Of a stretch of DNA of 64,000 bases, positions 12,845 to 37,865 are shown in pieces; the stretch's first letter is position 1, and each line of letters starts with the position of its first letter. Below the pieces are notes generated by a model. It was not told where the DNA came from, did no database searches, and saw only the letters and a list, made by a program, of their open reading frames with translations. Where the stretch lies: positions 1 through 64,000 of IMG/VR virus record IMGVR_UViG_3300026518_000006; one strand, 5' to 3'. The position numbers were made by a program, and so were the translations under genes.

Positions 12845-13573
12845 ATGACATTTAAAGACCTCTATGGAGACAAATCAAATGAAGTCTATTATGGAGACCT
12901 TAATATCTCTGATAAAGGATTAACTTCATTAGAGGGTTGTTATAAAAAAGTTGAGGGCAATTTTGATTGTAGTTATAACAAAATAACTTCATTTAAGTAC
13001 TGTCCTGATATTAGTGGTGACTTTTATTGTAATAGAAACAACATAGCTGCATTTAAGTTTTGTCCTGATGTTGAGGGTGATTTTGATTGTAGTTATAACA
13101 AAATAACTTCCTTTAAGTACTGTCCTGATGTTAAGGGTGACTTTTATTGTAATGGAAACAACATAGCTTCATTTGAATACTGTCCTGATATTAGTGGTGA
13201 CTTTAATTGTAGTGATAATCAAATAACTTCATTTAAGTTTTGTCCTGATGTTGAGGGTGATTTTGATTGTTATAATAACAAAATAACTTCCTTTGAATAC
13301 TGTCCTGATATTAGTGGTGACTTTAATTGTAGTGATAATCAAATAACTTCATTTAAATACTGTCCTGATATTGAGGGTAATTTTTATTGTAGTAGAAACA
13401 AAATAACTTCCTTTAAGTTTTGTCCTGATATTAAGGGTAATTTTAATTGTAATCATAATCAAATAACCTCATTTGAAAACAAATACTATTACCCTAATGT
13501 AGAGTTAGACAAAGACATTAAACAAAAATATATTGAGTTCGGTAAAAAATATTTTCCTCAGTATTTTATTTGA
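12845..13573 (+). CDS. leucine-rich-repeat protein 1 (8 x 20-aa modules), tag PQYFI
   Basis: Repeat [KQN]I[TA]SF[KE][YF]CPD[IV]xG[DN]FxCxxN; 60-bp DNA repeats. Confidence 0.9.
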   Translation: MTFKDLYGDKSNEVYYGDLNISDKGLTSLEGCYKKVEGNFDCSYNKITSFKYCPDISGDFYCNRNNIAAFKFCPDVEGDFDCSYNKITSFKYCPDVKGDFYCNGNNIASFEYCPDISGDFNCSDNQITSFKFCPDVEGDFDCYNNKITSFEYCPDISGDFNCSDNQITSFKYCPDIEGNFYCSRNKITSFKFCPDIKGNFNCNHNQITSFENKYYYPNVELDKDIKQKYIEFGKKYFPQYFI

Positions 13574-13619
13574 GTACTTTAGTTGAATACTTTAGTTGAA
13601 TACTTTATTTAAGTACTTT
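13562..13619 (+). repeat. 13-bp tandem array (TACTTTAKTTRAR)
   Basis: 4-5 units overlapping the LRR stop codon. Confidence 0.85.
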
Positions 13620-13635
13620 CCCATACCTCTTCAAG

Positions 13636-13755
13636 AGATTTTACTTTTTAAAAAGTAAAATCTTTAAAAGTCCTCAAAAAATACTCAAAAATTTCTAAAA
13701 CTACTTGACTTCTACTAAAGATTATTGTATAATAGGGTATAAAAAGAGATAAAGG
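13636..13755 (+). promoter_or_regulatory. dispersed cassette: 28-bp perfect palindrome + early promoter + RBS
   Basis: AGATTTTACTTTTT/AAAAAGTAAAATCT 13636-63; TTGACT 13705-10; TATAAT 13728-33. Confidence 0.9.
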
Positions 13756-14253
13756 ATGTATATGGATTTAAAGAAATTAAAAGCTATTTTAGTTACCACT
13801 TTTTGGAAGCAGAACGCTTGGCACAAGCACGGTGTTTTAGTTCATAGTTTAAGAGTAACTTGGGAGCTTTTCAAAAAGGGTCACTATAAGATGTTAATGG
13901 CGGGTCTACTCCACGATATCGGAAAACCTTTGGTTGCTTTTCAAAAACCTGCTGATATTAAAAGAGGTGAATACAGCTTTACTGACCACGAAGAAGCAAG
14001 TTATAATGTTATCAAAAATTGGTGGTTTATAAGTGATTACACAAAAACTTTGGTTCGTTACCACTATCTAATTCGTGATATGGATTTAGGTTTAAAAAAG
14101 GGTAATGGTAGATATGAGTTGAAAAAGCCTATTTGGGATAGCTTAGATGACAAAATGAAAGAAGATTTAAGACTGTTTCTTGAGTGTGATGACCTTGGAA
14201 AAGGAACTGACTTTGATGAAGTTATGGCTAAAAGAAAAGCTGAGAAGAAATAA
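13756..14253 (+). CDS. HD-domain phosphohydrolase (likely start 13762)
   Basis: H..GVLVHS, LLHDIGK, DHEE, final DD motif. Confidence 0.8.
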   Translation: MYMDLKKLKAILVTTFWKQNAWHKHGVLVHSLRVTWELFKKGHYKMLMAGLLHDIGKPLVAFQKPADIKRGEYSFTDHEEASYNVIKNWWFISDYTKTLVRYHYLIRDMDLGLKKGNGRYELKKPIWDSLDDKMKEDLRLFLECDDLGKGTDFDEVMAKRKAEKK

Positions 14254-14327
14254 AAAAAAAACTCCCTATTGGAAGTTGCTCTCTTTTAAAGATTATGTCA
14301 TAATAGTGCATATTTAAAGGAGAGATT

Positions 14328-14585
14328 ATGAATTACAAACTACAAAAGAAAGCTTTCAACAAAACATTAAAACTCACTCACGAAAACCTTGAAAAGAAGA
14401 TGTGGGATTACTATATGAGTCTTCCTAAAGAAGACCGAAGCAAACTTGGCAAACTCCTCGCACACCCTACCTGTAGTAGTACTCTTAAACGGTGGTATAA
14501 TTTTTGGGGCGATAAGATTGAAATGCTTGATATTCACAGAGAGTACTTTGAGTTTGTTCTTGAAAAACTCAAGACTTATAAATAA
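14328..14585 (+). CDS. hypothetical protein
   Basis: 85 aa; AAGGAG RBS; TTGCTC-17-CATAAT promoter at 14276-14304. Confidence 0.7.
   Translation: MNYKLQKKAFNKTLKLTHENLEKKMWDYYMSLPKEDRSKLGKLLAHPTCSSTLKRWYNFWGDKIEMLDIHREYFEFVLEKLKTYK
14577..14584 (+). promoter_or_regulatory. T4-type late promoter TATAAATA
   Basis: Exact match upstream of the 14604-18207 gene run. Confidence 0.7.
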
Positions 14586-14603
14586 AATAAAACAAGGACT
14601 ATT

Positions 14604-15047
14604 ATGTTTAAAGAAATCTTCGAGGAGAGTATTACCTCCAAAGGAAACAATGAGGCAAGAACTCCAAAAGAGCTTCCACAAGAGTATAAAAATATGGTAA
14701 GATATATACCATCAGGAGCACAGATAATTGCTGAACTTGATGAAAAAAGTCTTAAACTTAAAATAATTACTTCTCTTTCAACTCCTACTGCATATACAGA
14801 TTTTGTAAGAAATCACGATAAAGATTTAAAAAGAAACACTGAAAAATTTGTCAAAGATGTAGAGGCAGTCATTAATCTTAAAAAGGCAATTCACGGAGCT
14901 TACATATTCATTTCGGGTGGCGATGGGTACATTGACTATACTCAATCACTTGAACTTATAGTTAATAGTAAAACAGAAGGTAAAAAATTAGCACTTCTAT
15001 ATGAAGCACTATCATTTTACATTGGTAGAAAAGCCCCGATGAGATAA
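14604..15047 (+). CDS. putative internal head protein (MFKEIFEE N-terminus)
   Basis: Late promoter plus capsid-targeting-like N-terminus. Confidence 0.55.
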   Translation: MFKEIFEESITSKGNNEARTPKELPQEYKNMVRYIPSGAQIIAELDEKSLKLKIITSLSTPTAYTDFVRNHDKDLKRNTEKFVKDVEAVINLKKAIHGAYIFISGGDGYIDYTQSLELIVNSKTEGKKLALLYEALSFYIGRKAPMR

Positions 15048-15056
15048 GGATTTGAT

Positions 15057-15779
15057 ATGGCTGTAGATACATTTAGAATGAAGAGTACTATTGAAGATAT
15101 TATTAAAGATACTCTAAAAGAAAACCCAAAGGCTACAATGGCATATATACTCAACAACCTACACTATGAAATAGGTAGAGGTAAATATGACTCTGTAGCA
15201 GAAAAAGAAATTAAAAAAATGCCACTAAAAGATAGAGATGAATGGTTTAAGCGTTTAATTGAGCCGTTTAAAGTACCAAAAGGAAAACTTACTGAAAGTT
15301 TTTTAGATATGATTTTACAAGAATCTAAAACAATTTCAGAAGCACTAAACGAAGAAAATTTTTGCCAAACATTAGAAAAAGAATTCCGACAATATTTTCC
15401 AAATGGTTATTTTTATTGTGAGCGTGGACAAAGTTTAGGGTTGGAATACTTTACAATTGCCTTTGGGATGGTAAAAAATGAAAAAGATTTACCGCACAAC
15501 ATAAGACAAAATGACCCAATGTATCATAAAATTTTGGTTTATATCAATGGAGATGATGACCTTGAAATTAATGTTTTACAGGGTGGTTTATATGTTAAAC
15601 CTGAAGTTGGCTCTTGGAAAGCGATGGATTTAATAAAAACAGGGTTTAGAAATGTGAAAAAAACCACATTTAAAAACACAGAGAAAAAATTTAAAACATT
15701 CTTCAAAAAACTCCACACTATTGTAAAAGATAATCAGCATAAGTTGGCTTCAGATATCCCAACAAAATATTATATATAA
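15057..15779 (+). CDS. hypothetical protein, putative virion protein
   Basis: 240 aa; internal LTE/LQE/LNE gp21-type cleavage-like motifs. Confidence 0.6.
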   Translation: MAVDTFRMKSTIEDIIKDTLKENPKATMAYILNNLHYEIGRGKYDSVAEKEIKKMPLKDRDEWFKRLIEPFKVPKGKLTESFLDMILQESKTISEALNEENFCQTLEKEFRQYFPNGYFYCERGQSLGLEYFTIAFGMVKNEKDLPHNIRQNDPMYHKILVYINGDDDLEINVLQGGLYVKPEVGSWKAMDLIKTGFRNVKKTTFKNTEKKFKTFFKKLHTIVKDNQHKLASDIPTKYYI

Positions 15780-15801
15780 CAAAAGAATAAAAGGAAATAT
15801 T

Positions 15802-17952
15802 ATGCAACTATCAAATTTTAAATCATTTAAACAAGATATCAATGAAGTCTTAATTACATTTGGAAATAAAGCCTACCCAAAATTCGGAAACATTGTTATC
15901 TTAGCAGGCGGAGCAGGTTGTTACCCAAAAGGAACAGAATATTTTAACGGTACTTCTTGGGTACCAATCGAAGATTATGATGGGGGTAAAATTTTACAGT
16001 ATAACCCAACAGACGGTAAAGCAACACTAACTAAACCAACCGACTATATTGTTCTTCCTACTGACCAATTTTATCGTATTAAAAACAGAAGAGTTGACTT
16101 TGTTACATCTGAGACACACAAACATATACTTATCAACGAGAAAACAAACAAAAAAGAGGTTTTAACAACTAAAGATATTTATGCTAAACACAATACACTA
16201 TCAAGAGGAAATAAAGCTAAACTAATCACTTCTTTTGATTATAGTGGCGATGGAATAGATTTAGATGATAATGAGATTAAATTGAGAATAGCTGTAATTG
16301 CAGATGGTCACATTCTACCTGTAAAAAAAGGACATAAAGTAAGAATATCTTTTAATAAAGATAGAAAGATTGAATATTTTAAAGAACTTCTTATTAACTC
16401 AAAGAAAGATTATAAAGAATACAAAGAAATTATTAACGGTGTAGAATTTACGAGATTTGAATTTTATCATACAACAAATGAAAAAGAGTTCCAAGATTAT
16501 TGGTATAATGCTTCTAAAAAACAACTCAAACTTATTACAGAAGAGATTCTAAAATGGGATGGCTCTATATCAAATAGAGCGGGTAGAAAAGAAGCAAAGA
16601 GATTTAGTTCAAACTCTAAAAAGAGCATAGATTTCGTTCAATTTGCATTCCATAGTATTGGAAAAACAGCTACACTATCAGTTGATAATCGTGTCGATAA
16701 AAATATCAATTACTCTTTGGTTATAAATCATAGCGATGGTTTGGGTATTTCTAAGAATGATAGAGCTGTTTCCACTACCAAAATCGAAAAGGTTAAAGCT
16801 TCAGATGAGATGTATTGTTTTACTGTAGATAGTGGTTTTTTTGTAGTCAGACAAAAGGGTAGAGTATATGTTTCAGGCAATTCAGGCAAAGGTTATGTTC
16901 AAGACAAACTAATGGGAATAGAGGGGAAAGCACTAGATGTAGATTTCTTAAAAAAGATGGCTCTAAAAGCACCTGAACTACAAAAAAAGGTAAAAGAGAA
17001 ATTTGGAAAAGACCTCAGCGAATTCAACTTAAAGCGTCCTCAAGATGTGAAAGATTTGCACGAGATTATTAAAAAGATGGGTCTTTCAGATGCAAAGAAA
17101 GAAAACCTCTATACTTCTATTTTAGCAGGAAATCCCGAAAGAAAACCAAACTTAATCTTTGATGTTACCTTAGATAGTTTTAGTAAATTTGAAGAGATAA
17201 CAAAAAAAGCCGATGAATTAGGGTATAAAAAAGAAAATATTCATATTGTGTGGGTGGTAAATGATATTAAAGTAGCAATGGAACAGAACAGAGGGCGTGA
17301 CCGTATTGTACCTGAAGACATTTTGATTAGCACTCACAAAGGGGCTTCTCTAACAATGGATAAAATACTTTCGCAATCTAAAAAAATCACAAAATATATG
17401 AATGGAGTGATAGTTCTTGCTTTCAATAAAAAAGGTGAAGATAGTGTTGTTAGAAAGTCTAAATTGCCGAATATTGCAGATTTACAAAAAAAGCTTAAAA
17501 AAGCTGAGGATAAAGGTGATTTTGACGCTATGCACAGTATCGAAAAAGAAATCGAAGATTTCAAAGCTGAATACGGTAATAAAGGTATCAGACAAGGTTC
17601 AGGTGGTTTCTATGTAGTAGAAGCCAATTATGTGGTTGTAAAGGAAAAAGGAAAGCCTATTGATGAAAAGAAACTTGGACGAAAACTTCTTGTAAAAATT
17701 AAAGACTATACCCCAAATGAGAAAGATTTTCCTACCCCTAAAAAAGAAAGTCACGAAGCCGATGTAACTGATGTGATTGTAGAAAAAAACTCATTAGAAG
17801 CAATCCGTGAGCTTACTGATGAACTATCTCAACTAGGTAAAATACTCACCACAGAGTACAAAAAACAAAGAGAAAATCTTAAACACAATGTAGAAGATGT
17901 GGAAAAGAAGATGTTGGTTTTAACCAAAAAACTACAAAAAGAGCTTTCGTAG
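15802..17952 (+). CDS. zeta-toxin/AAA_33-like P-loop NTPase/kinase with an intein (about 395 aa after splicing)
   Basis: Splicing restores Walker A GGAG|SGKG; NLIFDVT; AMEQNRGRDRIVP. Confidence 0.75.
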   Translation: MQLSNFKSFKQDINEVLITFGNKAYPKFGNIVILAGGAGCYPKGTEYFNGTSWVPIEDYDGGKILQYNPTDGKATLTKPTDYIVLPTDQFYRIKNRRVDFVTSETHKHILINEKTNKKEVLTTKDIYAKHNTLSRGNKAKLITSFDYSGDGIDLDDNEIKLRIAVIADGHILPVKKGHKVRISFNKDRKIEYFKELLINSKKDYKEYKEIINGVEFTRFEFYHTTNEKEFQDYWYNASKKQLKLITEEILKWDGSISNRAGRKEAKRFSSNSKKSIDFVQFAFHSIGKTATLSVDNRVDKNINYSLVINHSDGLGISKNDRAVSTTKIEKVKASDEMYCFTVDSGFFVVRQKGRVYVSGNSGKGYVQDKLMGIEGKALDVDFLKKMALKAPELQKKVKEKFGKDLSEFNLKRPQDVKDLHEIIKKMGLSDAKKENLYTSILAGNPERKPNLIFDVTLDSFSKFEEITKKADELGYKKENIHIVWVVNDIKVAMEQNRGRDRIVPEDILISTHKGASLTMDKILSQSKKITKYMNGVIVLAFNKKGEDSVVRKSKLPNIADLQKKLKKAEDKGDFDAMHSIEKEIEDFKAEYGNKGIRQGSGGFYVVEANYVVVKEKGKPIDEKKLGRKLLVKIKDYTPNEKDFPTPKKESHEADVTDVIVEKNSLEAIRELTDELSQLGKILTTEYKKQRENLKHNVEDVEKKMLVLTKKLQKELS
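15919..16881 (+). mobile_element. intein (321 aa) with LAGLIDADG homing endonuclease
   Basis: Starts Cys (CYPKGTE); ends YCFTV...VSGN followed by Ser; IAVIADGH and ILKWDGS blocks. Confidence 0.9.
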
Positions 17953-17979
17953 CTCTTTTTTGGATAACAAAGGACTTAT

Positions 17980-18274: not shown

Positions 18275-18691
18275 ATGACATACAAAGACCTCATCAACAA
18301 AATTGAATCAAAAAATTACACACTCACTAAACTATCACAAAAAATTGAAAAAGAACACGCTATAGCTACGGCAATTAGACGAACACTAAAAACTCTCTTT
18401 TTAGAAGCTGTCGAAAAATCAGGCAAAAAATATATTGGTTTATATGAAATGGGGGAAATCTATATGGAACAACCATATAACTTTCGTATAGGAATGAGCC
18501 TTAGTGAGTTTAGAGATAACCTGAAATCTATTATATCAAAAGAAACATCTTTGGATATTTTTTATCACGAAAATATAGAAGGGCTTTACAATATGTCTGT
18601 TAGTTTGTATAAATTTAGGGCTTACCGTGATGTTCTTATTTCAAAACTTAATATATTAGATTACAATTATTTCAACGCTGAGGAGTTATAA
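18275..18691 (+). CDS. hypothetical protein
   Basis: 138 aa; AAAGGA RBS. Confidence 0.7.
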   Translation: MTYKDLINKIESKNYTLTKLSQKIEKEHAIATAIRRTLKTLFLEAVEKSGKKYIGLYEMGEIYMEQPYNFRIGMSLSEFRDNLKSIISKETSLDIFYHENIEGLYNMSVSLYKFRAYRDVLISKLNILDYNYFNAEEL

Positions 18692-19620
18692 TGTATTGCG
18701 TATATTGTGGGGACTATTTTTCTAATAACAAGTCTCTTGTAAACCATAGGAAAATTTGTAAATTGAACCCGAAAAGTGATACAGCAAAAGAAAGAGAAAC
18801 TAACAAAAAAGAAGAAGAATATCTCAATATTGTCAATAAAATAGAAAGCTTTAATGATATCATTAAAACTGTTGATGAGTATATGGCTGAGAGAGGGTAT
18901 GTAGTTCATTGGGAATCAATTCCATCTAATTTTAGTATAGATATAAATCACTACGAAAAAACTGTATCTAACAATAAAAAGACACAAAATGTTGGGTGGA
19001 AAGGTAATTGGAAAGGCAAAATCGAAAGAATACCTGATTTTAAAGGAGATAATTACAGAAGATGTAGTTTTTGGGATATAAATGGCGATATGTCGGGAAT
19101 ATACGATTTAAAATTCCTCCGTACAAACGGTGGTTCTTGGGGGAGTAGTTTTAGTGGAGAAGGTTATATTCTGCTAAATGATTTTCCTAAACTTATTAAA
19201 AAATATGAAAAACAGGCATCAAAAACTAAAATTAAGCAAGATTTGTCTGAAATAACAATTAGATTGGACAAACTTTATCAAAATAGAGAAAATGAGTACA
19301 TAAAAAATGACGAACTCAAAATAAAAGCTCACGAGATACAACAAAAAATGAGAAAAAATTTGGAAAATTTATCCACAGTTATAAGAAAAAGAGAGACTAC
19401 ACTTAGAAATAAGTTCAGAAATGAAACAACAATCCCATTGCCATCAATAGAGGATGATTTTCAAAATCTTAGTGGATATATGGAGCTAAAAAATAAATTT
19501 GCTTCAAATGAAAAAGTGGCTCTTGATGATGATGTAATCAAAGACGCTATCAAAGACCTTGAAGGTGTATATGCTGAATACAAGGCATTTACAAACGAAT
19601 ATTCAGAATTTTTTATATAG
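18691..19620 (+). CDS. hypothetical protein with N-terminal C2H2-like zinc finger, tag SEFFI
   Basis: CVYCG...L.NHRKIC; paralogue of 21723..22383. Confidence 0.75.
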   Translation: MYCVYCGDYFSNNKSLVNHRKICKLNPKSDTAKERETNKKEEEYLNIVNKIESFNDIIKTVDEYMAERGYVVHWESIPSNFSIDINHYEKTVSNNKKTQNVGWKGNWKGKIERIPDFKGDNYRRCSFWDINGDMSGIYDLKFLRTNGGSWGSSFSGEGYILLNDFPKLIKKYEKQASKTKIKQDLSEITIRLDKLYQNRENEYIKNDELKIKAHEIQQKMRKNLENLSTVIRKRETTLRNKFRNETTIPLPSIEDDFQNLSGYMELKNKFASNEKVALDDDVIKDAIKDLEGVYAEYKAFTNEYSEFFI

Positions 19621-20159: not shown

Positions 20160-20270
20160 ATGGGTCAAGATTGGATGTTATTGGTTTTTATTGTGGGTTA
20201 TGCGATTTTTATTTTTGGTATGAGTTGGCTATGTAATCATATGAATTGGTGTAAAGATATATTGGAGTGA
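20160..20270 (+). CDS. 36-aa single-pass membrane protein
   Basis: AAGGA RBS; MGQDWMLLVFIVGYAIFIFGMSWL... Confidence 0.55.
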   Translation: MGQDWMLLVFIVGYAIFIFGMSWLCNHMNWCKDILE

Positions 20271-20272
20271 AA

Positions 20273-21001
20273 ATGACATTTAAAGACCTCTATGGAGACA
20301 AATCAAATGAAGTCTATTATGGAGACCTTAATATCTCTGATAAAGGATTAACTTCATTAGAGGGTTGTTATAAAAAAGTTGAGGGCAATTTTTATTGTAG
20401 TAGAAACAAAATAACTTCATTTGAGTATTGTCCTGATATTAAGGATAACTTTTATTGTAATGGAAACAAAATAACCTCATTTAAGTTTTGTCCTGATGTT
20501 GAGGGCAATTTTTATTGTAGTAGAAACAAAATAACTTCATTTGAGTATTGTCCTGATATTAAGGGTGATTTTTATTGTAGTGGAAATCAAATAACTTCCT
20601 TTGAGTATTGTCCTGATATTAAGGGTGATTTTTATTGTAGGGGAAACAAAATAACTTCCTTTGAGTATTGTCCTGATGTTAAGGGTAGCTTTAATTGTAG
20701 AGATAATCAAATAACTTCCTTTGAGTATTGTCCTGATATTAAGGGTGATTTTTATTGTAGGGGAAACAAAATAACTTCATTTAAATACTGTCCTGATATT
20801 AAGGGTAACTTTTATTGTAGTGGAAATCAAATAACTTCCTTTGAGTATTGTCCTGATATTAGTGGTGACTTTAGTTGTCGTAATAACAAAATAACTTCCT
20901 TTGAAAACGAGTATTACTATCCTAATGTAGAGTTAGACAAAGACATTAAACAAAAATATATTGAGTTCGGTAAAGAACACTTTCCTCAGTACTTTATTTG
21001 A
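20273..21001 (+). CDS. leucine-rich-repeat protein 2 (8 x 20-aa modules), tag PQYFI
   Basis: Caps essentially identical to 12845 copy; different module order. Confidence 0.9.
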   Translation: MTFKDLYGDKSNEVYYGDLNISDKGLTSLEGCYKKVEGNFYCSRNKITSFEYCPDIKDNFYCNGNKITSFKFCPDVEGNFYCSRNKITSFEYCPDIKGDFYCSGNQITSFEYCPDIKGDFYCRGNKITSFEYCPDVKGSFNCRDNQITSFEYCPDIKGDFYCRGNKITSFKYCPDIKGNFYCSGNQITSFEYCPDISGDFSCRNNKITSFENEYYYPNVELDKDIKQKYIEFGKEHFPQYFI

Positions 21002-21060
21002 GTACTTTAGTTGAATACTTTATTTAAGTACTTTATCTGAGTACTTTATTTTAGTACTTT
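20990..21060 (+). repeat. 13-bp tandem array (TACTTTAKYTRAR)
   Basis: About 6 units overlapping the LRR stop codon. Confidence 0.85.
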
Positions 21061-21076
21061 CTCATACCTCTTCAAG

Positions 21077-21197
21077 AGATTTTACTTTTTAAAAGTAAAA
21101 TCTTTAAAAGTACTCAAATAGCACTCAAATAGCACTCAAAAACACTTGACTTCTTATAAAGATTATTGTATAATTGGTATAAAAAGAGAAAAGGATT
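21077..21197 (+). promoter_or_regulatory. dispersed cassette: palindrome + 11-bp CTCAAATAGCA repeats + early promoter
   Basis: Palindrome 21077-103; TTGACT 21146-51; TATAAT 21169-74. Confidence 0.9.
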
Positions 21198-21200: not shown

Positions 21201-21716
21201 ATGAAAACAAGAGTTGTAAAAAATAAAAATGGAAAATATATAGTTCAATTTAAACGAGAGATTTTCGGTATTTCTATGTTTTGGTGGACTACATCGGGCT
21301 ATCTTGAGTGTAGTGGAGGGGGCAACTGTTGGAATGAGCCCTATATATTCAAAACAGAAAATGAAGCTGTTGAATTTATGATTAAAATGGTTTTGGAGCG
21401 AGAAACAAAAGACAAATTGGCTGAAGAAGCGGGTGTTGTTGCTGAAGCAACAAGCGAAGAAGTAAGAGAAAAATTTCCGCAATTTTTATATAGAAATATG
21501 ATAAGAGTAAAGAAAGATAAAAATAATTTGTATATTATTGAGAGAAGAGTTGGGTTTCACGCCATAAAGATGTGGTGGCGTGCGGTGTCTTATTATAGAG
21601 GACTACCGTATGTTTTCGCTTCTGAAGAGGAGGCTGTAAAATACTTTGTAAAAAATCTTGCCACTGAGTATGATAAACAAATATTAAGTAAAATATACCC
21701 TGAATATATTATCTAA
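21201..21716 (+). CDS. two paralogous small proteins fused in frame, tag YPEYII
   Basis: Internal repeat; first half ends EKFPQFLY; second ATG at 21498. Confidence 0.7.
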   Translation: MKTRVVKNKNGKYIVQFKREIFGISMFWWTTSGYLECSGGGNCWNEPYIFKTENEAVEFMIKMVLERETKDKLAEEAGVVAEATSEEVREKFPQFLYRNMIRVKKDKNNLYIIERRVGFHAIKMWWRAVSYYRGLPYVFASEEEAVKYFVKNLATEYDKQILSKIYPEYII

Positions 21717-25006: not shown

Positions 25007-25360
25007 ATGTTATTGACACCAAATGAATTGAAGGACTTTGAAAACTTCTATCTCCAAGAGAACGAAGTAGTTTTTGACAATTATTATAATAAGATATATT
25101 ATGATATTTTTAAACTAACTTTTGTAAAAAAATATACTATTTTTGGTATTTTTAATCGCACAAATAAGATTGAAAAAGAATATAAATTTAAAAGGAAGGT
25201 GACTCCAAGCAAAGAAGAAGGGTATATTGTAACCTCTATGTCTCCTGAAGCTGTTGAATTGAAAGACCAACTCAAACAAATAGTCTCCGATAAATGGCAC
25301 TGTATTTCTGATGAGAATTACGAGTTTTTTGTAAAAAAATTTCCTGAGAGGTTCGTGTGA
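25007..25360 (+). CDS. hypothetical protein with C-terminal tag (FPERFV)
   Basis: 117 aa ORF. Confidence 0.75.
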   Translation: MLLTPNELKDFENFYLQENEVVFDNYYNKIYYDIFKLTFVKKYTIFGIFNRTNKIEKEYKFKRKVTPSKEEGYIVTSMSPEAVELKDQLKQIVSDKWHCISDENYEFFVKKFPERFV

Positions 25361-25692
25361 TGTGGGCGAATTTAAAATATAGAGATGTTTTTTATTTTAA
25401 AAGGAATAAGTTTGATGGTGAATCCACCTCATATATTGCTTTAGTACTAAATACATCAAAGCAGAAAAAATCAATAACAATTTCTATAATTTTGGAAGAT
25501 AACCAAATTAAAAATACATATAACCATCCTGAAACACTATCATTAGGAGATTTATATATGGACACAAACATTGAATTTTTAAAATTAATAGGGGCACTGA
25601 AAAATCAAGATGTAAAACATTTCAAAGAGTACCCTATTAAAAAATGGATTAATGAAGTATTTTCAAAAGAGTACCCCGAATACTTAGTGTAA
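25357..25692 (+). CDS. hypothetical protein with C-terminal tag (YPEYLV)
   Basis: 111 aa; GTGA coupling. Confidence 0.75.
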   Translation: MMWANLKYRDVFYFKRNKFDGESTSYIALVLNTSKQKKSITISIILEDNQIKNTYNHPETLSLGDLYMDTNIEFLKLIGALKNQDVKHFKEYPIKKWINEVFSKEYPEYLV

Positions 25693-27471: not shown

Positions 27472-28299
27472 ATGAAGTTATTTAAAACAAACAAAAATAA
27501 AAAAGAACATAAAAAACACCAAAATGAAGTTGTAGCCACACCAATTAGTATGCCTAATATTATGGGTTCTGATAATATCATTGAAAGTGACACACATACA
27601 TTAATAAGTGTGGAACAGCCCGCTGAAATGTTGCCTTTAATGGGCGAAGACGGCTCTATTCTACAAGGAATTTACCAAGAACAGCCTCAATTTACGCTTT
27701 ATAAGTTGTATTTGTCTGATTTTGAAGATGAAAGCAGACACGGGCTTCACAAAATAATCAGTAAACTACAAGAAGCAAATCCTGAAGATGTATTGGAGCT
27801 CCACATTGCAGGACACGGGGGATATATTTCCGAAGGTCTTGCTTTTTACAATCTGATTAGTTCTTTGTTTAGAGGGAGAACATCAGCCTATTTGACATAT
27901 GGGTATAGTATGAATGCTTTAGCCTTTTTATTCGCTGATGAAAGAATTGTTTATGAACACAGTGAAATTATGTTCCATACATATTCAGCAGGCTTTGGAG
28001 GAAAGCGTGATGATATTCTTTCTCAAATAGCACATACAGATAAGCATCTTCAAAAGTTCTTCAAAAAGATTTTGAGCCCATATTTTTCAGAAGAAGAAAT
28101 ACAGTCTATGGGGTCAAACAAAGACTTTTGGCTTAACTCACACGAGATGTTAGTTCGTGGTATTGCCACAGGAATAATCATTGATGGAGAGTATCTTAGT
28201 AGAGATGACTATTTTAAAAAATATAAGAAAAATGGAAAATTGAGAAAAAAATGGCTTAAAGAAAATAAGGAAAATAAAGATGGGCAAAGTACTGTATGA
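27472..28299 (+). CDS. ClpP-like serine protease
   Basis: IAGHGG, YSMNA (catalytic Ser), SEIMFHT (catalytic His), DFWL. Confidence 0.75.
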   Translation: MKLFKTNKNKKEHKKHQNEVVATPISMPNIMGSDNIIESDTHTLISVEQPAEMLPLMGEDGSILQGIYQEQPQFTLYKLYLSDFEDESRHGLHKIISKLQEANPEDVLELHIAGHGGYISEGLAFYNLISSLFRGRTSAYLTYGYSMNALAFLFADERIVYEHSEIMFHTYSAGFGGKRDDILSQIAHTDKHLQKFFKKILSPYFSEEEIQSMGSNKDFWLNSHEMLVRGIATGIIIDGEYLSRDDYFKKYKKNGKLRKKWLKENKENKDGQSTV

Positions 28300-28559: not shown

Positions 28560-29249
28560 ATGATTCTGCACATACCACATTCAAGTGGCAATTTATTTGG
28601 TTTTGACAGACCACAAAAAGATTTGATACTCCTCACAGATTGGTATACTGATGAGCTATTTTTCCACGAAAATTCAGATAGGTTAGTGTTCGATACTTCA
28701 AGACTGTTATGTGATGTTGAGAGGTTTCCCGATGATAAAGAACCATTATTTAAAGATGGGTTTGGTATATGTTATACAAAAACAATAGACGGAAATAATA
28801 TCTCTTTTGATGAAAGTCATAAAAACATAATGCTCACAGCATATTATGAACATCACAAAAACTTAAATATACTCACCCAAAAGCAATTAACAATGAAGTC
28901 ATTTGTTGTAGTGGTTGATTGTCATAGCTTTGACCCAAAACTTTTTGGTGATGATGTGGATTTTTGTATAGGGGTTAATGATGATAAACACCCTGAATTA
29001 CTTGATAATGTGGTTAAGTTTATAGAGAACAACAAGTACTCTGTAAAAGTAAATGAGCCGTTTCAAGGGGCTATAGTTCCAACAAATCATACAGATAACA
29101 TTGATGTAACATCTATTATGATAGAAATTAACAAAAGATTATATCTTGAAGAAAACTCAAACAACAAAAACAAAGACTTTGAGAAAATTCAGTCCTTTAT
29201 AAATAAGATATTAAATATTATTTCGGAGTACGAAATATCTAAGGACTAG
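28560..29249 (+). CDS. N-formylglutamate amidohydrolase family protein
   Basis: LHIPHSS, TDWYTDELF, SRLLCDVERF, VDCHSF, IMIEIN. Confidence 0.85.
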   Translation: MILHIPHSSGNLFGFDRPQKDLILLTDWYTDELFFHENSDRLVFDTSRLLCDVERFPDDKEPLFKDGFGICYTKTIDGNNISFDESHKNIMLTAYYEHHKNLNILTQKQLTMKSFVVVVDCHSFDPKLFGDDVDFCIGVNDDKHPELLDNVVKFIENNKYSVKVNEPFQGAIVPTNHTDNIDVTSIMIEINKRLYLEENSNNKNKDFEKIQSFINKILNIISEYEISKD

Positions 29250-33173: not shown

Positions 33174-33845
33174 ATGACATTAGGTAAAATTTTACAAGAG
33201 AGGTATGAGATTGATAGCTATGGTACTATTGACGAAAGTGGCGCAGGTATTTCCCGTGTATTAAAAACACTTGAAGATGGTAATGATTTCTTAATTATCA
33301 CTGCTTCAAGGGGTAAATTCTCAAAGAAAGAGAACGCTAAAAGAAACAGCCAACTCATTAAAAGTATTAGAGATGAACTTGGTGTCAAAAGTGGTGCATA
33401 TAAGCTTGTTGGGCATTGGAAAGAGTGTAACCATAAACTTGAAGATGGTCAAAAGATTTCGGATTGCAAAGGAGCTATTAAAGATGAGCTTGAAGAAAGT
33501 TGGTTAATCCCAAAACCAAAAAATATCGCACCTGAAGAGTTCTTAGATATCGCTAAAAAAGTCGCTAAAAAATATGACCAAGATGCTTTTGTCATCCGTC
33601 TTGATGGAAAACTTACACTAAATGGTAAAGATGGTACGGTATGGGAAGACTTAGGCAAAGCAGATAAAAAGTCTATTTCAACAGGTTTCAGTCGTATTAT
33701 CGATGTTCAAGGTTACTCAGAATTAAAGAAGCAACGAAATAAAGGTAGAAATATCAACATCATCTTTGAAGATATAGCTTTGGTTGTGCCGAAAGACAAC
33801 AACAATTCTAAGAGGCTGTTTGCTTCCGCAAACATCTTGTACTGA
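33174..33845 (+). CDS. DUF3293-like protein, candidate virion cargo (MTLGKILQE)
   Basis: ITASR..ENAKRN..L, EES, KYDQDAF; TATAAATA at 33152-59. Confidence 0.55.
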   Translation: MTLGKILQERYEIDSYGTIDESGAGISRVLKTLEDGNDFLIITASRGKFSKKENAKRNSQLIKSIRDELGVKSGAYKLVGHWKECNHKLEDGQKISDCKGAIKDELEESWLIPKPKNIAPEEFLDIAKKVAKKYDQDAFVIRLDGKLTLNGKDGTVWEDLGKADKKSISTGFSRIIDVQGYSELKKQRNKGRNINIIFEDIALVVPKDNNNSKRLFASANILY

Positions 33846-34035: not shown

Positions 34036-34075
34036 TATAGTAATATTATCAAATACAAGAAAGGATTATTCTAAA

Positions 34076-34551: not shown

Positions 34552-34593
34552 ATGGATAAAACAAAACCTATTAAATAAATTAAAGGGTGAACA

Positions 34594-34905
34594 ATGGGTA
34601 TAAAATTATTTTCAAGTGGTAGAAGTGATTGTGGTGTTGTATATCCGACAGACCCAAATCCAAGTGTTTTTAAAATTGTTTCAATTCAAGAGTTCAGCGA
34701 ATACACTTTAGTAGTGGTTGACTATCCAAATTGTACTAATTTTGAGGGCAGAAAAGTTTTAGTGATGGATATGAGTGCTAATGATATTATGAGTATGGAA
34801 AAATTAGACCCTCATTTTATAGAGGGGAATAATATTATAGCGAGATTTGTGCCGACCAAAAAAGGCATAAGATTAGCTAAAAAAATATGTAAAGGTTGTA
34901 AATGA
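34594..34905 (+). CDS. conserved phage hypothetical protein
   Basis: DPNPSVFKI...YPNCTNFEGRKVLV. Confidence 0.7.
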   Translation: MGIKLFSSGRSDCGVVYPTDPNPSVFKIVSIQEFSEYTLVVVDYPNCTNFEGRKVLVMDMSANDIMSMEKLDPHFIEGNNIIARFVPTKKGIRLAKKICKGCK

Positions 34906-35918
34906 TTAAATTATTTAATGGTGATGCTCTTGATGTAATGGATAAGCTGATAGAAAAGGGTATTAAGGTGGACGCTATCATTACTGACCCACCGTATGGT
35001 ACTACAGCCTGTTCTTGGGATTCAGTAATTCCTTTTGATGAAATGTGGAAAAGATTAAATATTATTATGAAATCTAACGGGACAATCGCTTTGTTCGGTT
35101 CTGAGCCTTTTAGTAGTGCTTTGAGGATGAGTAATATAGAAATGTTTAAGTATGATTGGATATGGGAAAAATCTCAAGGTGCAAATTTTGCATTAGTAAA
35201 ACATCAACCATATAAGGTGCACGAAATTATATCTGTATTTTATAATGACCTCAGTAAAACTACATACTCAACAAAAGCGTTTAAAGAATTGAGAAGATAT
35301 TTCAAAGACCTATTAAATTATATCGGATTACCAAAGTCAAAGATAGTAAATGATGTCGGGGGAAGAGCTGACCATTGTTTTAGAAGCGATAGCTCACAGT
35401 GGTGTATTCCATCAGAAGAAACATATAATATACTGATTAACAAATACAATATAGACAAATATAAAGGATTTAAAACATATTCGGAATTAAATTTGATATA
35501 CGAAGATGAATTAAAATCATTTAAAAAAACCTACAATTATATTACTACAGATGGAAAGAAATATATATCAGGCAAAGGGCATAGTGGGGAAACAACTGGT
35601 AATTTTAAAAAAACACAAACAATAAATAACGGGAAGAGATTTCCAAGAAGTATTCAAAAATTTGCACAAAACAAAACCATTTCCTTTCACCCAACCCAAA
35701 AGCCTGTTGAATTGATGGAATATTTGATACGAACATATACAAATGAGGGAGAATTAGTTTTAGATTTCACTATGGGTTCAGGGACAACTTTAGTCGCCTG
35801 TAAACAGCTAAATAGAAATGGTATAGGTATTGAGTTAAATGAGGACTATTTTAAAATAGCACAACAAAGAGTAGACGAAGCCGTAGAGGGTTCATCTTTA
35901 AATAAGGATGTGGAATGA
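34902..35918 (+). CDS. site-specific DNA methyltransferase (N4C/N6A, beta class) with internal insertion
   Basis: ITDPPY; HPTQKP; VLDFTMGSGTT. Confidence 0.9.
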   Translation: MIKLFNGDALDVMDKLIEKGIKVDAIITDPPYGTTACSWDSVIPFDEMWKRLNIIMKSNGTIALFGSEPFSSALRMSNIEMFKYDWIWEKSQGANFALVKHQPYKVHEIISVFYNDLSKTTYSTKAFKELRRYFKDLLNYIGLPKSKIVNDVGGRADHCFRSDSSQWCIPSEETYNILINKYNIDKYKGFKTYSELNLIYEDELKSFKKTYNYITTDGKKYISGKGHSGETTGNFKKTQTINNGKRFPRSIQKFAQNKTISFHPTQKPVELMEYLIRTYTNEGELVLDFTMGSGTTLVACKQLNRNGIGIELNEDYFKIAQQRVDEAVEGSSLNKDVE

Positions 35919-36145
35919 GTGAGCCGAAAAAAAGAGATTTTTTAGGACAAGAGATTAATGTTGGCGATTTTGCTTGTTGTTCGAGTGCTTCAGCCTCAAC
36001 AGGAATGTATATAGGAAAAGTGATAAAAATCACAGACCACAAGGTACAACTAACAGCTTTAGACGGCAAAAAACATATGAAATCTTTTGATAAAGTTTTT
36101 ATAGTAACTAAACAAATTGAGGAAATTCCTGAGATGTTGATTTAG
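35915..36145 (+). CDS. small protein with tag (IPEMLI)
   Basis: DFLGQEINVGD; 76 aa. Confidence 0.7.
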   Translation: MSEPKKRDFLGQEINVGDFACCSSASASTGMYIGKVIKITDHKVQLTALDGKKHMKSFDKVFIVTKQIEEIPEMLI

Positions 36146-36150
36146 TTATC

Positions 36151-36852
36151 TTAGATGCCTTTTGTGGTTTTTATTTTTTTATTTAGTTTTTTAGCTAATG
36201 ATACTAATACACCACCTATAAAATGATGTGATGTTGCTCCTGCCCAAGGGAAACTTAAACCTAAAGCACCTCCTGTAATTAGCAACATCAACATCTTCAA
36301 TCCCTCTTCGCCTGCAAATAAATCACTCAAAGAATAGTTGCCCGATAATGCTTCTATTACATCATCAAAATTCATATCATAGGTTATATCTCCTGTAAAA
36401 CTCATATTAAGCCAAATAAAGATTAAAATGCCACTCACCGCAACACCACCTAATGCTTTTATTTTTGGGTTATTCTGAAGCCATTTGTCGAGTGCTCTCA
36501 ATTTATCTTCACTCCATTTCCCTACATTTGAATCAGCTATATATTTTGGAATTAGCCCTATAATGGTTTGGTATGCTTTGAAACCTCTCTTAACAATATC
36601 ATATAGTCGTTTAAAAGACCAATGAATAGTAGTGAAAAATTTATACACTCTACTATCTCTAAAGAAATTTACAGCTTCTTTAAATGACATACCAACTTTA
36701 TCAGAAATTTCTTTAATGAAGTCAATCTTTTTCTTTACTGTAGATGGAATGGATATTTCGTTTAGTTTGTGAAAATCTTCTGTATATAATAAAAACTGAT
36801 TATACTGATACTGATAATTATACTCTTTGATATTTATTGCTTTTGAGTTCAT
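36151..36852 (-). CDS. late membrane protein
   Basis: Hydrophobic C-terminal segments; TATAAATA at 36870-77. Confidence 0.65.
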   Translation of the reverse strand: MNSKAINIKEYNYQYQYNQFLLYTEDFHKLNEISIPSTVKKKIDFIKEISDKVGMSFKEAVNFFRDSRVYKFFTTIHWSFKRLYDIVKRGFKAYQTIIGLIPKYIADSNVGKWSEDKLRALDKWLQNNPKIKALGGVAVSGILIFIWLNMSFTGDITYDMNFDDVIEALSGNYSLSDLFAGEEGLKMLMLLITGGALGLSFPWAGATSHHFIGGVLVSLAKKLNKKIKTTKGI

Positions 36853-36908
36853 ATAATAATCCTTTGTTGTATTTATAAAGGTTTGTATCGAGGCGTGAAT
36901 AGCTCTTT

Positions 36909-37016
36909 GAGATATTTTGCTTTTTTAAAAAGTAAAATATCTCAAAGTACTCAAAACTCTTGACTTCTTTCAAAGATTATTATATAATAGGGTACAAAAA
37001 GAGATAAAGGACTCAA
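36909..37016 (+). promoter_or_regulatory. dispersed cassette: palindrome + early promoter + RBS
   Basis: Palindrome 36909-43; TTGACT 36960-65; TATAAT 36983-88; leader nearly identical to 12788-12844. Confidence 0.9.
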
Positions 37017-37865
37017 ATGACATTCAAAGACCTCTATGGAGACAAATCAAATGAAGTCTATTATGGAAACCTTGATATCTCTGATAAAGGATTAACTTCA
37101 TTGGAAGGTTGTTATAAAAGAGTTGAGGGCGATTTTAATTGTAGTTATAACCAAATAACTTCATTCAAGTATTGTCCTGATATTAGTGGTGACTTTTATT
37201 GTGGTTATAATCAGATAACCTCATTTGAGTTTTGTCCTGATGTTGAGGGCAATTTTTATTGTAGTAGAAACAAAATAACTTCATTTGAGTTTTGCCCTGA
37301 TGTTAAGGGCGATTTTGATTGTAGGGGAAACAAAATAACTTCATTTAAATACTGTCCTGATGTTGAGGGTAATTTTTATTGTAGTTATAACAAAATAACT
37401 TCATTTAAGTTTTGTCCTGATATTAAGGGGAATTTTTATTGCAGTTATAATCAGATAACTTCATTCAAATGCTGTCCTGATATTAGTGGTGACTTTTATT
37501 GTGGTTATAATCAAATAACTTCATTTGAGTTTTGTCATGATATTAACGGTGTCTTTAATTGTAATGGTAATCAAATAGCTTCATTTAAATACTGTCCTGA
37601 TATTAAGGGGGATTTTTATTGTTATAATAACAAAATAGATTCCTTTAAGTATTGTCCTGATGTTAAAGGTGATATTAATTGTAGTGATAATCAAATAGCT
37701 TCATTTAAATACTGTCCTGATATTAAGGGTAATTTTAATTGTAATCATAATCAAATAACCTCATTTGAAAACAAATACTATTACCCTAATGTAGAGTTAG
37801 ACGAAGACATCAAAAAACGCTATGTTGAGTTCGGTAAAAAACACTTTCCTCAGTATTTCATATAG
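37017..37865 (+). CDS. leucine-rich-repeat protein 3 (10 x 20-aa modules), tag PQYFI
   Basis: 282 aa = 45 + 10x20 + 37. Confidence 0.9.
   Translation: MTFKDLYGDKSNEVYYGNLDISDKGLTSLEGCYKRVEGDFNCSYNQITSFKYCPDISGDFYCGYNQITSFEFCPDVEGNFYCSRNKITSFEFCPDVKGDFDCRGNKITSFKYCPDVEGNFYCSYNKITSFKFCPDIKGNFYCSYNQITSFKCCPDISGDFYCGYNQITSFEFCHDINGVFNCNGNQIASFKYCPDIKGDFYCYNNKIDSFKYCPDVKGDINCSDNQIASFKYCPDIKGNFNCNHNQITSFENKYYYPNVELDEDIKKRYVEFGKKHFPQYFI

Follow-up and report, generated by a model that had tools for sequence, protein, structure and literature searches.

The DNA analysed here, a window of 64 kb, belongs to a 235.6-kb contig of a T4-like phage (a myovirus), and T4-like core genes were detected in it. 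Three genes encoding LRR proteins, designated A, B and C, are found in the window (Table 1), and beyond the window the contig carries three further paralogs, D, E and F, with 7, 5 and 6 repeat modules, so that six members are present in all. Genes A, B and C translate as intact ORFs, and all six paralogs are uninterrupted, complete ORFs. Their neighbourhood is made up of small early ORFs and replication genes. For gene B, an ATG start is found at 20273 and a GTG at 20267.

Table 1. Positions in the 64-kb window of the LRR genes, the predicted elements flanking them and the ClpP-family gene.
Feature	Position	Strand	Components or remarks
Upstream cassette, gene A	12739-12816	+	11-bp direct repeat AAAAGTCCTCA (x2.3) 12739-12763; sigma-70-type promoter TTGACT-17-TATAAT 12788-12816
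LRR gene A (242 aa)	12845-13573	+	N-cap 12845-12976; modules x8 12977-13456; C-cap and stop 13457-13573
Downstream cassette, gene A	13560-13733	+	13-bp tandem repeat AGTACTTTAGTTG (x4.6) 13560-13619; A/T-rich hairpin ~13634-13665; consensus promoter 13705-13733
LRR gene B (242 aa)	20273-21001	+	N-cap 20273-20404; modules x8 20405-20884; C-cap and stop 20885-21001
Downstream cassette, gene B	20988-21174	+	13-bp tandem repeat (x5.6) 20988-21060; hairpin ~21075-21105; 11-bp repeat 21112-21140; consensus promoter 21146-21174 (+)
ClpP-family serine protease gene	27472-28299	+	early/replication region; Pfam CLP_protease, E=1.5e-11
Sigma-70-type consensus promoter cassette	36959-36988	+	31 nt upstream of gene C
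LRR gene C (282 aa)	37017-37865	+	N-cap 37017-37148; modules x10 37149-37748; C-cap and stop 37749-37865
Downstream cassette, gene C	37866-37974	+	hairpin ~37877-37901; 22-bp repeat 37897-37941; consensus promoter 37946-37974

A previous reading based on the sequence only (hereafter the sequence-only reading) had described 8, 8 and 10 copies of a 60-bp/20-aa module set between near-identical N- and C-caps at the three loci, and this description held. Exact 20-aa spacing of the anchor N-x-I-[TAD]-[SA]-F gave 8, 8 and 10 full modules in A, B and C, 26 in total; Tandem Repeats Finder delimited period-60 arrays at 12977-13474 (8.3 copies), 20382-20904 (8.7) and 37126-37766 (10.7); and the matches of an nhmmer module profile to the 64-kb window were confined to these three genes. 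In each of them a degenerate module lies within the N-cap before the array and a partial module in the C-cap after it. Cap boundaries were placed at 44 aa and 38 aa. Identity among the six paralogs amounts to 86-98% (protein) and 92-98% (DNA) for the N-cap and to 79-97% (protein) for the C-cap with its terminal FPQYFI; the products of A, B and C all have FPQYFI as their C-terminal end. Only these 38 residues follow the last module, no domain other than LRR was found by Pfam search, and no N-terminal hydrophobic segment or signal peptide was present in the sequences of proteins A-C. The family as a whole comprises six phage LRR proteins whose ends are constant and whose repeat units, 5 to 10 in number, have been reshuffled and evolve fast.

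Assignment of the family to the LRR fold, as had been proposed, was supported by several approaches. Pfam LRR_4 scored above the gathering score in A, B and C. The module core reads F-x-C-x-x-N-x-I, which is of the LxxLxLxxNxL type, and the variable segment of the module is the P-containing T-S-F-x-x-C-P-D-[IV], which corresponds to the LxxLPxLPxx type. Profile searches matched SspH2 (2.8e-26), InlJ, YopM, SspH1 and IpaH, InlJ being the second-best PDB profile match. The AF2 model of the gene C protein (pLDDT 90.3, pTM 0.84) showed DSSP strand (E) at F-x in each module, and its top Foldseek matches were YopM, IpaH7.8 and SspH2, with an identity of only 11-19% in the structural alignments to bacterial LRRs. 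Fold matches were also obtained to LRR proteins from giant viruses and from entomopoxviruses. Combined, these results predict that the proteins are curved solenoids of the bacterial 20-residue class, with a parallel beta-sheet lining the concave side.

The distribution of variation along the module was assessed by entropy over the 44 modules of the six paralogs. Residues C6, N9, I11, F14, C17 and D19 were invariant (44/44), and entropy reached 1.5 bits at LRR position 5, 2.3 at position 7 and 2.45 at position 8, with lesser variation at positions 1, 3 and 10. Variation is thus focused, as had been noticed, on the x positions of the F-x-C-x-x-N strand/loop, and structure prediction placed these positions on the repeated beta-strand/loop of the AF2 model. 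Y, N, D, S, R, G and H occupy the variable sites. Positions 5, 7 and 8 are most likely solvent-exposed, judging from the strands assigned by DSSP, from the way invariant and variable residues alternate and from the analogy with solved LRRs. In solved IpaH and SspH complexes the equivalent strand/loop forms the concave face that binds the ligand. The pN/pS ratio was 1.78 at positions 5, 7 and 8 versus 0.18 at scaffold positions, both values being crude pairwise counts over recombining repeats, obtained without a recombination-aware codon model. By these counts the three positions carry an excess of non-synonymous change. Positive selection would bear on residues exposed in the beta-strand and in the ascending loop, mainly positions 5, 7 and 8 and to a lesser extent 1, 3 and 10.

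Comparison of the paralogs indicates that the family is a recombination mosaic, because polymorphisms in both caps form mutually incompatible site patterns among paralogs and identical tracts occupy module positions that differ from one paralog to another. Between genes, such out-of-register identities extended over 70, 68 and 53 nt, and within genes over 121, 74 and 65 nt; simulated tract maxima were 43 ± 5 and 38 ± 5 nt, and the observed values were attained in 0 of 500 simulations. The sequence-only reading was therefore right in proposing a recombination-diversified family. Its further statement that identical sub-modules recur in different orders is correct for tracts shorter than a module, which are out of register, but not for whole modules, 42 of 44 being distinct and the only identities (B4=B6 and D3=D6) lying each within one gene. 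In a second assembly of the same phage the B and C arrays were base-for-base identical over the assembled extent and therefore gave no sign of rapid programmed shuffling. Paralog D showed a 180-nt (3-module) indel between two assemblies 99.8-99.9% identical, with 7 versus 4 modules and the junction inside a 121-nt exact repeat; this length difference could be an assembler collapse. Contigs of other assemblies end inside LRR arrays. Such contig breaks, and the D indel, are expected behaviour of short-read assemblers at 60-nt repeats.

The LRR genes are associated with a recurrent set of flanking elements. The promoter upstream of gene A had a consensus score of 11/12 in a promoter scan, and 11/12 consensus promoters, with a Shine-Dalgarno site, lie directly upstream of A, C, D and F, that is, four of the six paralogs; gene B lacks such a promoter immediately upstream. 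The 30-nt promoter cassette occurs seven times in the window, versus 0 expected, and five of the seven copies flank LRR genes. A hairpin and/or a promoter cassette follows every LRR gene (6/6), a conserved A/T-rich hairpin being present at five of the six, and paralogs D, E and F are flanked by the same hairpin-promoter cassettes. These cassettes, in which a stem-loop is followed by an early sigma-70-type promoter of predicted activity around non-core genes, are of the PeSL type. In T4-type phages, PeSL are stem-loop and early-promoter repeats that bracket non-core genes and are sites of homologous exchange (PMC2839356; PMC4122927). Composition is the same in both cases, and the TTGACT-17-TATAAT cassette sequence is specific to this phage. 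From their position, the cassettes may have a role in moving or duplicating LRR genes. LRR diversity would be inherited rather than programmed: unequal homologous recombination between 60-nt modules would duplicate or delete blocks of 2-3 modules, and gene conversion or crossing-over would operate among paralogs, probably aided by the PeSL-like cassettes; the selection on the variable positions described above would be the third contributor.

Our preferred interpretation, to which we assign a probability of about 0.6, is that the six paralogs form a family of small cytoplasmic early LRR proteins whose diversity is inherited, and which together constitute a panel of binders with different specificities. 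Made early in infection, each protein would be a short solenoid composed of an N-cap, 5-10 LRR modules with a cysteine ladder and a helical C-cap. The panel would most likely engage variable proteins of the host (or of a competitor) soon after infection, acting as inhibitors or adaptors, and a C-terminal tag common to dozens of other early proteins would link the LRR proteins to one common partner. Gene structure, fold, copy number, the mosaic history, the sites of variation, the promoter cassettes and the reality of the tag follow from the present data, whereas early expression, cytoplasmic location, the engagement of host proteins and what the tag does are inferred. No tie of the LRR proteins to defence or counter-defence was found among PADLOC, PHROG or Pfam matches.

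The tag has the consensus [FY]-P-[EQ]-[YF]-[FL]-[IV] at the C-terminus, FPQYFI in the LRR proteins. It was found on 16 of the 97 ORFs of the window (0.1 expected), where its codons vary synonymously; in the relative L004, it is present on 10 of 24 ORFs; and in Vibrio phage SRILMA, which has been cultured, 32 ORFs within the first 100 kb carry it, the LRR homologue among them. In the window phage no sheath, tube or baseplate protein carries it. Most tagged proteins are ORFans of about 100 aa. Conservation at the peptide level and recurrence in SRILMA corroborate the common tag that had been noted at the LRR loci and indicate that it is a real phage-wide peptide motif. LRR proteins bearing the tag were observed in this phage, L004, P0001 and SRILMA, four lineages or variants whose C-caps otherwise differ; among the best 120 LRR homologues, the other 118 lack the tag, which therefore behaves as a portable module. 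AF2 confidence over the tail bearing the tag was fairly high (about 82-93), so the tail may lie against the C-cap instead of extending freely.

A candidate partner of the tag is the ClpP-family protease encoded in the window, which has PHROG matches to protease families and 27% identity to SRILMA ClpP. The LRR proteins could then be interchangeable substrate adaptors, a role proposed in the sequence-only reading, the concave face capturing polymorphic host targets such as defence proteins and the tag delivering them to one machine used by all, which might be the phage ClpP-family protease together with a host unfoldase. SspB-type adaptors, which are bound to ClpX via a C-terminal peptide, provide a precedent, and the presence of a peptide-level tag on many otherwise unrelated early proteins, its coupling to LRRs in four lineages or variants and its portable-module behaviour are what such a function would predict. 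Both tag-using phages carry a ClpP-family protease in the early region, and SRILMA has in addition an S49 peptidase within an array of tagged ORFs; however, this link between tag and protease is one of co-occurrence alone, and ClpP-like genes are frequent among large phages. To our knowledge, the motif is unlike any known ClpX, ClpA or Lon recognition signal. Tagged ORFans of ~100 aa are more readily seen as substrates or hub ligands than as adaptors, and a tail packed on the C-cap would not favour delivery either. We regard this specific version, delivery of captured targets via the tag, as rather unlikely.

A location of the LRR proteins in the virion or at the cell surface, as accessory adhesins or decoration proteins whose diversity tracks host receptors, is much harder to reconcile with the data and appears very improbable. 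Variable binding faces would fit receptor recognition, one related viral locus (L007) encodes a 2195-aa LRR protein, and LRR or beta-helix domains have been proposed as host-recognition elements in the chimallivirus Goslar (PMC13742148). By contrast, the genes studied here lie amid small early ORFs and replication genes and have host-type consensus promoters; their products lack a signal peptide as well as any domain for attachment to fibre or baseplate; the two cysteines present in each module fit a reducing cytoplasm; and the tail is shared with many non-structural early proteins and with no sheath, tube or baseplate protein.

The likeness to VLRs put forward in the sequence-only reading stands for the design (caps, variable module number, hypervariable positions) but not for the mechanism, the genes being complete and neither silent modules nor a deaminase having been found in the window. 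The nhmmer module profile detected no silent or orphan modules outside genes A-C in the 64-kb window, the remainder of the 235.6-kb contig having been searched with the N-cap only, and the families listed for 86 window ORFs at E ≤ 1e-4 included no reverse transcriptase, no dedicated recombinase and, with 25 of 26 families listed, no deaminase. Programmed shuffling at high frequency during infection, whether by donor-cassette copy-choice, a diversity-generating retroelement or site-specific shuffling, is hardly credible: invariant caps, variable module number and hypervariable concave positions are a similar layout, and the 3-module difference between two near-identical assemblies and the contigs ending inside arrays might be read as its products, but all six copies are complete genes, the window lacks the elements just listed, codons differ at all three positions (e.g., TAT, GGA, AGA and GAT at LRR position 8) rather than at adenines only, the B and C arrays are unchanged in the second assembly over its assembled extent, and both contig ends and D indel fit short-read assembly of 60-nt repeats. 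A diversity-generating retroelement target in particular was rejected, given the lack of a reverse transcriptase in the window and differences that are not adenine-specific.

The organization described here is not restricted to one phage. Five other phage contigs carry from 4 to about 20 LRR paralogs each, with caps invariant within each set, variable module numbers and, again, hypervariable positions 3, 5, 7, 8 and 10; judged from these sequences, the capped, multi-copy, variable-module LRR design recurs in other large phages. That large phages in general carry inherited binder libraries, multigene families of bare LRR proteins with concave faces under diversifying selection to engage variable targets in bacteria, defence proteins for example, and that in the present lineage the six-residue tag plugs the library into one common phage or host machine such as a ClpP-type protease, is a doubtful extrapolation; if true, bacterial viruses would possess an equivalent of the adaptor families known as poxvirus ankyrin/F-box and IpaH proteins.

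The known proteins closest in repeat type are YopM, IpaH, SspH1/2 and SlrP, with which the phage family has in common the 20-aa repeat and the consensus [L/F]-x-[V/C]-x-x-N-x-[L/I]-x-x-[L/F]-x-x-x-P. In the IpaH family, too, several paralogs combine an LRR recognition part that varies with a C-terminal part that is conserved. IpaH and SspH, however, bear an NEL E3-ligase domain, whereas the phage proteins have neither NEL nor any other catalytic domain. Unlike type III effectors, which act in the animal cell, the phage proteins presumably target the bacterial cell, lack a secretion signal and are encoded next to replication genes in a lytic-type phage. The phage family shares with InlJ a cysteine ladder with Cys in core position 6 of each repeat, all phage modules (44/44) having Cys at 6 and at 17; classification of the family as an internalin was rejected, since signal peptide and inter-repeat domain are both missing.

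In lamprey and hagfish, the germline VLR gene is incomplete, non-coding DNA separating its cap-coding ends, and somatic assembly, with a cytidine deaminase of the AID/APOBEC type, fills it from banks of silent partial LRR cassettes in its flanks. Both systems place invariant caps around a variable number of LRR modules and show diversity at x positions of the concave face, to which module recombination contributes. By contrast, the phage has six complete genes and, in the window, no silent cassettes or deaminase; its modules are of 20 residues instead of 24, without disulfide-bonded LRRNT/LRRCT caps; and its proteins would be intracellular, with variation that is evolutionary and not somatic. 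Plant NLR and receptor-like LRR clusters resemble the phage family in having tandem or dispersed paralogs whose number of repeats shifts by unequal crossing-over, and in undergoing gene conversion as well as positive selection at solvent-exposed xxLxLxx residues, but they encode host immune receptors with signalling domains, whereas the phage proteins are bare LRR domains of viral origin. Many repeat-binder paralogs per genome are also found in the LRR families of entomopoxviruses, mimivirus and marseillevirus and in poxvirus ankyrin proteins. Poxvirus ANK/PRANC proteins consist of a repeat domain that varies and, at the C-terminus, a short conserved motif through which they all dock on one cellular machine, which makes them, by analogy, the closest functional parallel to the LRR-plus-tag layout; the poxvirus motif, an F-box-like domain, binds Skp1 in a eukaryotic host, whereas the phage tag has six residues and would operate in a bacterial one.

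The LRR genes A, B and C were confirmed as intact ORFs with invariant caps and the module numbers anticipated from the sequence alone, on the evidence of translation, TRF, a module profile and Pfam, whose LRR_4 model scored above threshold. Each encodes a 44-aa N-cap containing a degenerate first repeat, a series of modules of exactly 20 aa, and a 38-aa C-cap ending in FPQYFI. TRF detected period-60 arrays at the three loci, with super-periods of 120 and 180 nt in A and B, and a DNA profile of the modules found no match in the window outside these genes; modules are identical at 48 of 60 bases on average. Three further intact paralogs, D, E and F, are encoded outside the window on the opposite strand of the same phage contig, with the same caps, tag and flanking cassettes. 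The family of six comprises 44 modules, 42 of them distinct; protein identity among paralogs is 86–98% for the N-caps and 79–97% for the C-caps. Six copies of an N-cap 29-mer are present on the contig and no others in the JGI metagenome or IMG/VR collections, and exact-sequence look-up of proteins A, B and C returned the source contig only.

This contig (also Ga0256829_1000023; 235,593 bp, viral, ca. 30% G+C) shares its coordinates with the window, which is its first 64 kb. It carries a T4-like gene set, including a family-B DNA polymerase, tail sheath, tube, gp5, gp25, baseplate and tail-cap homologues, and is a T4-like myovirus. Megablast of 10 kb around the LRR genes against 50,697 phage records gave no match, and therefore there is no close cultured relative in that set; the DNA polymerase shares only about 30% identity with those of Campylobacter phages. 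The TTGACT-17-TATAAT promoters and AAGGA ribosome-binding sites suggest that the host uses classical sigma-70 and Shine-Dalgarno signals. The window also includes an array of nine tRNA genes, an early-region gene for an actin-like protein, and methyltransferases that, together with a SAM-lyase-family protein, resemble a set of anti-restriction functions. Unusually for a replication module, a gene of the N-formylglutamate amidohydrolase family (FGase) is found nearby, about 650 nt 5' of the DNA polymerase gene, with one 193-aa ORF in between.

Features of the window and LRR paralogs elsewhere on the contig
Feature	Position	Strand	Remarks
LRR gene A	12845-13573	+	intact ORF, 8 modules
LRR gene B	20273-21001	+	intact ORF, 8 modules
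LRR gene C	37017-37865	+	intact ORF, 10 modules
LRR paralog D	L003:10001-10669 (contig ca. 100.7-101.3 kb)	-	intact, 7 modules
LRR paralog E	L022 revcomp 453-1001	opposite	intact, 5 modules
LRR paralog F	L024 revcomp 4321-4929	opposite	intact, 6 modules
Non-LRR tagged ORFs, first six of 13	1122-1496, 1914-2231, 3285-3608, 3605-3913, 3944-4288, 4285-4596	+	ends approximately [FY]-P-E-Y-F-[IV]-COOH
Non-LRR tagged ORFs, remainder	6809-7366, 18691-19620, 21201-21716, 25007-25360, 25360-25692, 35915-36145, 48953-49207	+	
Promoter cassette, 7 copies	4968-4997, 12787-12816, 13704-13733, 21145-21174, 36959-36988, 37945-37974, 48563-48592		30 nt, near-consensus sigma-70
13-bp tandem repeat AGTACTTTAGTTG	13560-13619, 20988-21060		4.6 and 5.6 copies; starts at stop codons of A and B
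11-bp direct repeat AAAAGTCCTCA	12739-12763		just 5' of promoter cassette
11-bp direct repeat ACTCAAATAGC	21112-21140		just 5' of promoter cassette
ClpP-family serine protease	27472-28299	+	Ser and His motifs apparently present
tRNA array	41003-42776 and 48357-48433		Glu, Met x2, Tyr, Asp, Ile, Thr, Gln, Lys
Actin-like (ALP/ParM-type) protein	8925-9830	+	
Three DNA methyltransferases and SAM-lyase-family protein	11132-11998, 33174-33845, 34902-35918, 44436-45446		methyltransferases: one Dam-like D12, two N6_N4
FGase	28560-29249	+	
Small HD-domain protein	13756-14253	+	directly 3' of LRR gene A

The fold of the repeats was assessed with an alignment-based AlphaFold2 model of protein C (pLDDT 90.3, pTM 0.84), in which F-x of each module forms a short strand, D-[IV] a second bridge and C-cap residues 263–276 a helix; an ESM Atlas entry for the same sequence has a pLDDT of 0.90. 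The best solved relatives by profile were SspH2 (2.8e-26), internalin J, YopM, SspH1 and several IpaH LRR domains, and the top Foldseek set agreed with these. This assigns the repeats to the bacterial 20-residue LRR class, with a cysteine ladder formed by the core positions 6 and 17, which are Cys in 44 of 44 modules. No NEL or other catalytic domain was found in the LRR proteins. The family also supplies small, naturally diversified cysteine-ladder LRR scaffolds.

Variation is concentrated at few positions of the module. Entropy over the 44 modules peaked at positions 8 (2.45 bits) and 7 (2.29), followed by position 1 (1.66) and by positions 3, 5 and 10 (ca. 1.5), and residues C6, N9, I11, F14, C17 and D19 never changed. 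The ratio of pairwise non-synonymous to synonymous differences was 1.78 (0.434/0.244) at positions 5, 7 and 8, and 0.18 (0.063/0.343) at scaffold positions. The residues used at the variable sites, Y, N, D, S, R, G and H, are typical of binding sites. In the modelled strand, position 5 is flanked by the invariant core residues F4 and C6, and positions 7 and 8 come next, ahead of the Asn ladder. In solved LRR complexes the equivalent positions contact the ligand, on the concave face and the ascending flank, where positions 5, 7 and 8 would lie by analogy. Of the proposal that the variable residues occupy the binding face, the entropy peak at positions 7 and 8 and the modelled strand at F-x are in support, the placement on the face itself being predicted from the model and from analogy.

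The mosaic character of the genes, also proposed from the sequence alone, was corroborated. Parsimony-informative sites of the N-cap support at least five mutually incompatible groupings of the six paralogs, and those of the C-cap support six; among the four copies first analyzed, the N-cap grouped AB|CD and the C-cap AC|BD. Such incompatible splits require recombination or gene conversion among paralogs. Out-of-register identity was found between genes, where module 2.8 of B equals module 3.8 of F over 70 nt, module 4.2 of D equals module 3.2 of F over 68 nt, and module 2.8 of C equals module 1.8 of F over 53 nt, and identical tracts also occur within D (121 nt, shift 180), B (74 nt, shift 120) and A (65 nt, shift 120). 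When modules were simulated by independent sampling of codon columns (500 runs), maximal tracts reached 43 ± 5 and 38 ± 5 nt, and the observed values were attained in none of the 500 runs. The nearest neighbour of a module resided in the same gene at 14.2 versus 6.8 expected, an approximately two-fold excess that fits local duplication.

Module order was compared with that in independent assemblies, several contigs of which (L037, L038, L040, L043) begin within or just past the arrays and give partial information on it. ENA assembly ERZ27262636 holds the same phage, with a 74-kb contig 99.8–99.9% identical to the D region. Gene D has four modules in that assembly versus seven here, as a consequence of a clean 180-nt indel whose junction falls within a 121-nt exact repeat. 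Unequal homologous recombination would be expected to produce such an indel; collapse by the assembler is also possible, although the repeat is shorter than the assembly k of 141. Two contigs of ERZ27262636 open inside the B and C arrays (L040:1-340 and L043:1-634), and the assembled array parts of 340 and 634 nt, with 5 kb of flank, were 100% identical to the window. Other assemblies, whose contigs were retrieved by neighbour-protein look-ups, break at gene A. Since 60-nt repeats break short-read assemblies, copy and module counts from such data are to be taken with caution. Module order is accordingly not visibly fluid, B and C agreeing wherever assembled and at most one locus, D, differing.

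The LRR proteins share with other ORFs a tag formed by their last six residues, [FYW/h]-P-[EQ]-[YFM..]-[FLYI]-[IV]-COOH. It is present on 16 of 97 non-overlapping ORFs of the window versus 0.1 expected, and in its strict form on 10 versus 0.015 expected, so that the common tag noticed at first stands. Every tagged ORF lies on the + strand and, with few exceptions, they are small ORFans of the early region; core proteins such as the polymerase, helicase and sheath do not have the tag. A DNA-level site over the gene ends was rejected because codons and stops vary synonymously and 3' sequences differ, and the constraint therefore acts on the peptide. A clamp-binding (PIP-like) motif was also considered; the C-terminus of the DNA polymerase does not carry the tag. 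In a relative (L004, 68% identical) 10 of 24 ORFs are tagged, the LRR protein among them, and in the cultured Vibrio phage VB_VaC_SRILMA (PP083314.1) the tag is found, unexpectedly, on 6 of 101 ORFs in the first 50 kb and on 26 of 96 between 50 and 100 kb. The SRILMA LRR homologue, encoded at 3330-3965, ends in KPEMLI, its repeats being 40% identical and its C-cap unrelated. Only two of the 120 best LRR homologues have the tag, both from this lineage, and so the tag is a portable element added to the LRR domain in a lineage-specific manner. PHROG, PADLOC and Pfam gave no informative family for tagged ORFs or for the neighbours of the LRR genes, and no literature on the tag strings was found.

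The sequence-only reading took the LRR proteins for variable substrate adaptors tied to the common tag. In favour of this, a ClpP-family protease gene is present in the early region of both phages that use the tag: here it lies amid replication genes and not in a head module, and SRILMA has a bona fide ClpP (33261-33845) adjoining an Alc homologue, as well as an S49 peptidase (60894-61805) within a run of tagged ORFs. Tag and protease are, however, linked by co-occurrence, and adaptor function, a reasonable specific version of a binder role, is doubtful. Dozens of early ORFans carry the tag, in two or more distant phage lineages, and, SRILMA being cultured, the docking question is directly testable.

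The best-supported reading is that the LRR genes form a family that is inherited, recombines and is under positive selection, and that they encode early, cytoplasmic binder proteins; the binding targets and the meaning of the tag are inferred. Literature searches for phage LRR gene families and for the sample accessions returned nothing relevant, the few phage papers with LRRs dealing with single tail-associated proteins, and the term LRR is absent from a review of jumbo-phage conflict systems (PMC7824862). Residence of the present proteins in the virion, or a role as adhesin, is unlikely.

All six LRR copies are complete genes flanked by cassettes. An 11/12-consensus promoter lies about 31 nt upstream of A, C, D and F. 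Downstream, all six genes have a further promoter copy and five of them a conserved A/T-rich hairpin. The promoter cassette was found seven times in the window versus none expected by chance, with five copies flanking LRR genes, and more copies lie beside D, E and F. The 13-bp tandem repeat, which is absent after gene C, and the 11-bp direct repeats are possible regulator-binding sites. Behind its own copy of the promoter cassette, the small HD-domain protein weakly matches PADLOC Cas3-HD models. The hairpin-promoter repeats fit the description of the PeSL cassettes of T4-type phages, which mediate modular exchange (PMC2839356; PMC4122927), and would provide a simple route for duplication and dispersal of the LRR unit. 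Differences among the variable codons affect all three positions, in contrast to DGR targets. Programmed assembly of the kind seen in VLRs, to which the genes had been likened, is very unlikely, given complete, cassette-bracketed genes, no silent modules in the window and no reverse transcriptase, deaminase or PDZ/TPR domain among 86 window ORFs.

Homologues of the LRR proteins numbered 654 at E ≤ 1e-3, nearly all unnamed and mostly on viral contigs; domains fused to distant ones (DUF5661, DUF4893 and other weak matches) offered no functional lead. Other large phages harbor 4 (L005), 8 (L008), 4 (L010) and 12 tandem (L016) LRR paralogs, and a 597-kb phage (L015) has about 20 in 20 kb. Each set has its own invariant termini and variable module numbers, with the highest entropy also at positions 3, 5, 7, 8 and 10. 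In view of these expansions, fixed caps with variable LRR modules in many copies are a recurrent feature of large phages and not a peculiarity of this genome. Recognition between host and parasite classically shows itself in families of LRR paralogs under diversifying selection, examples being plant R genes, VLRs and IpaH effectors. Its presence on the viral side of the conflict between phage and bacterium would suggest a class of phage proteins for host manipulation or counter-defence, none of which is described in the literature found. Structurally similar LRR gene families are those of giant viruses and entomopoxviruses.
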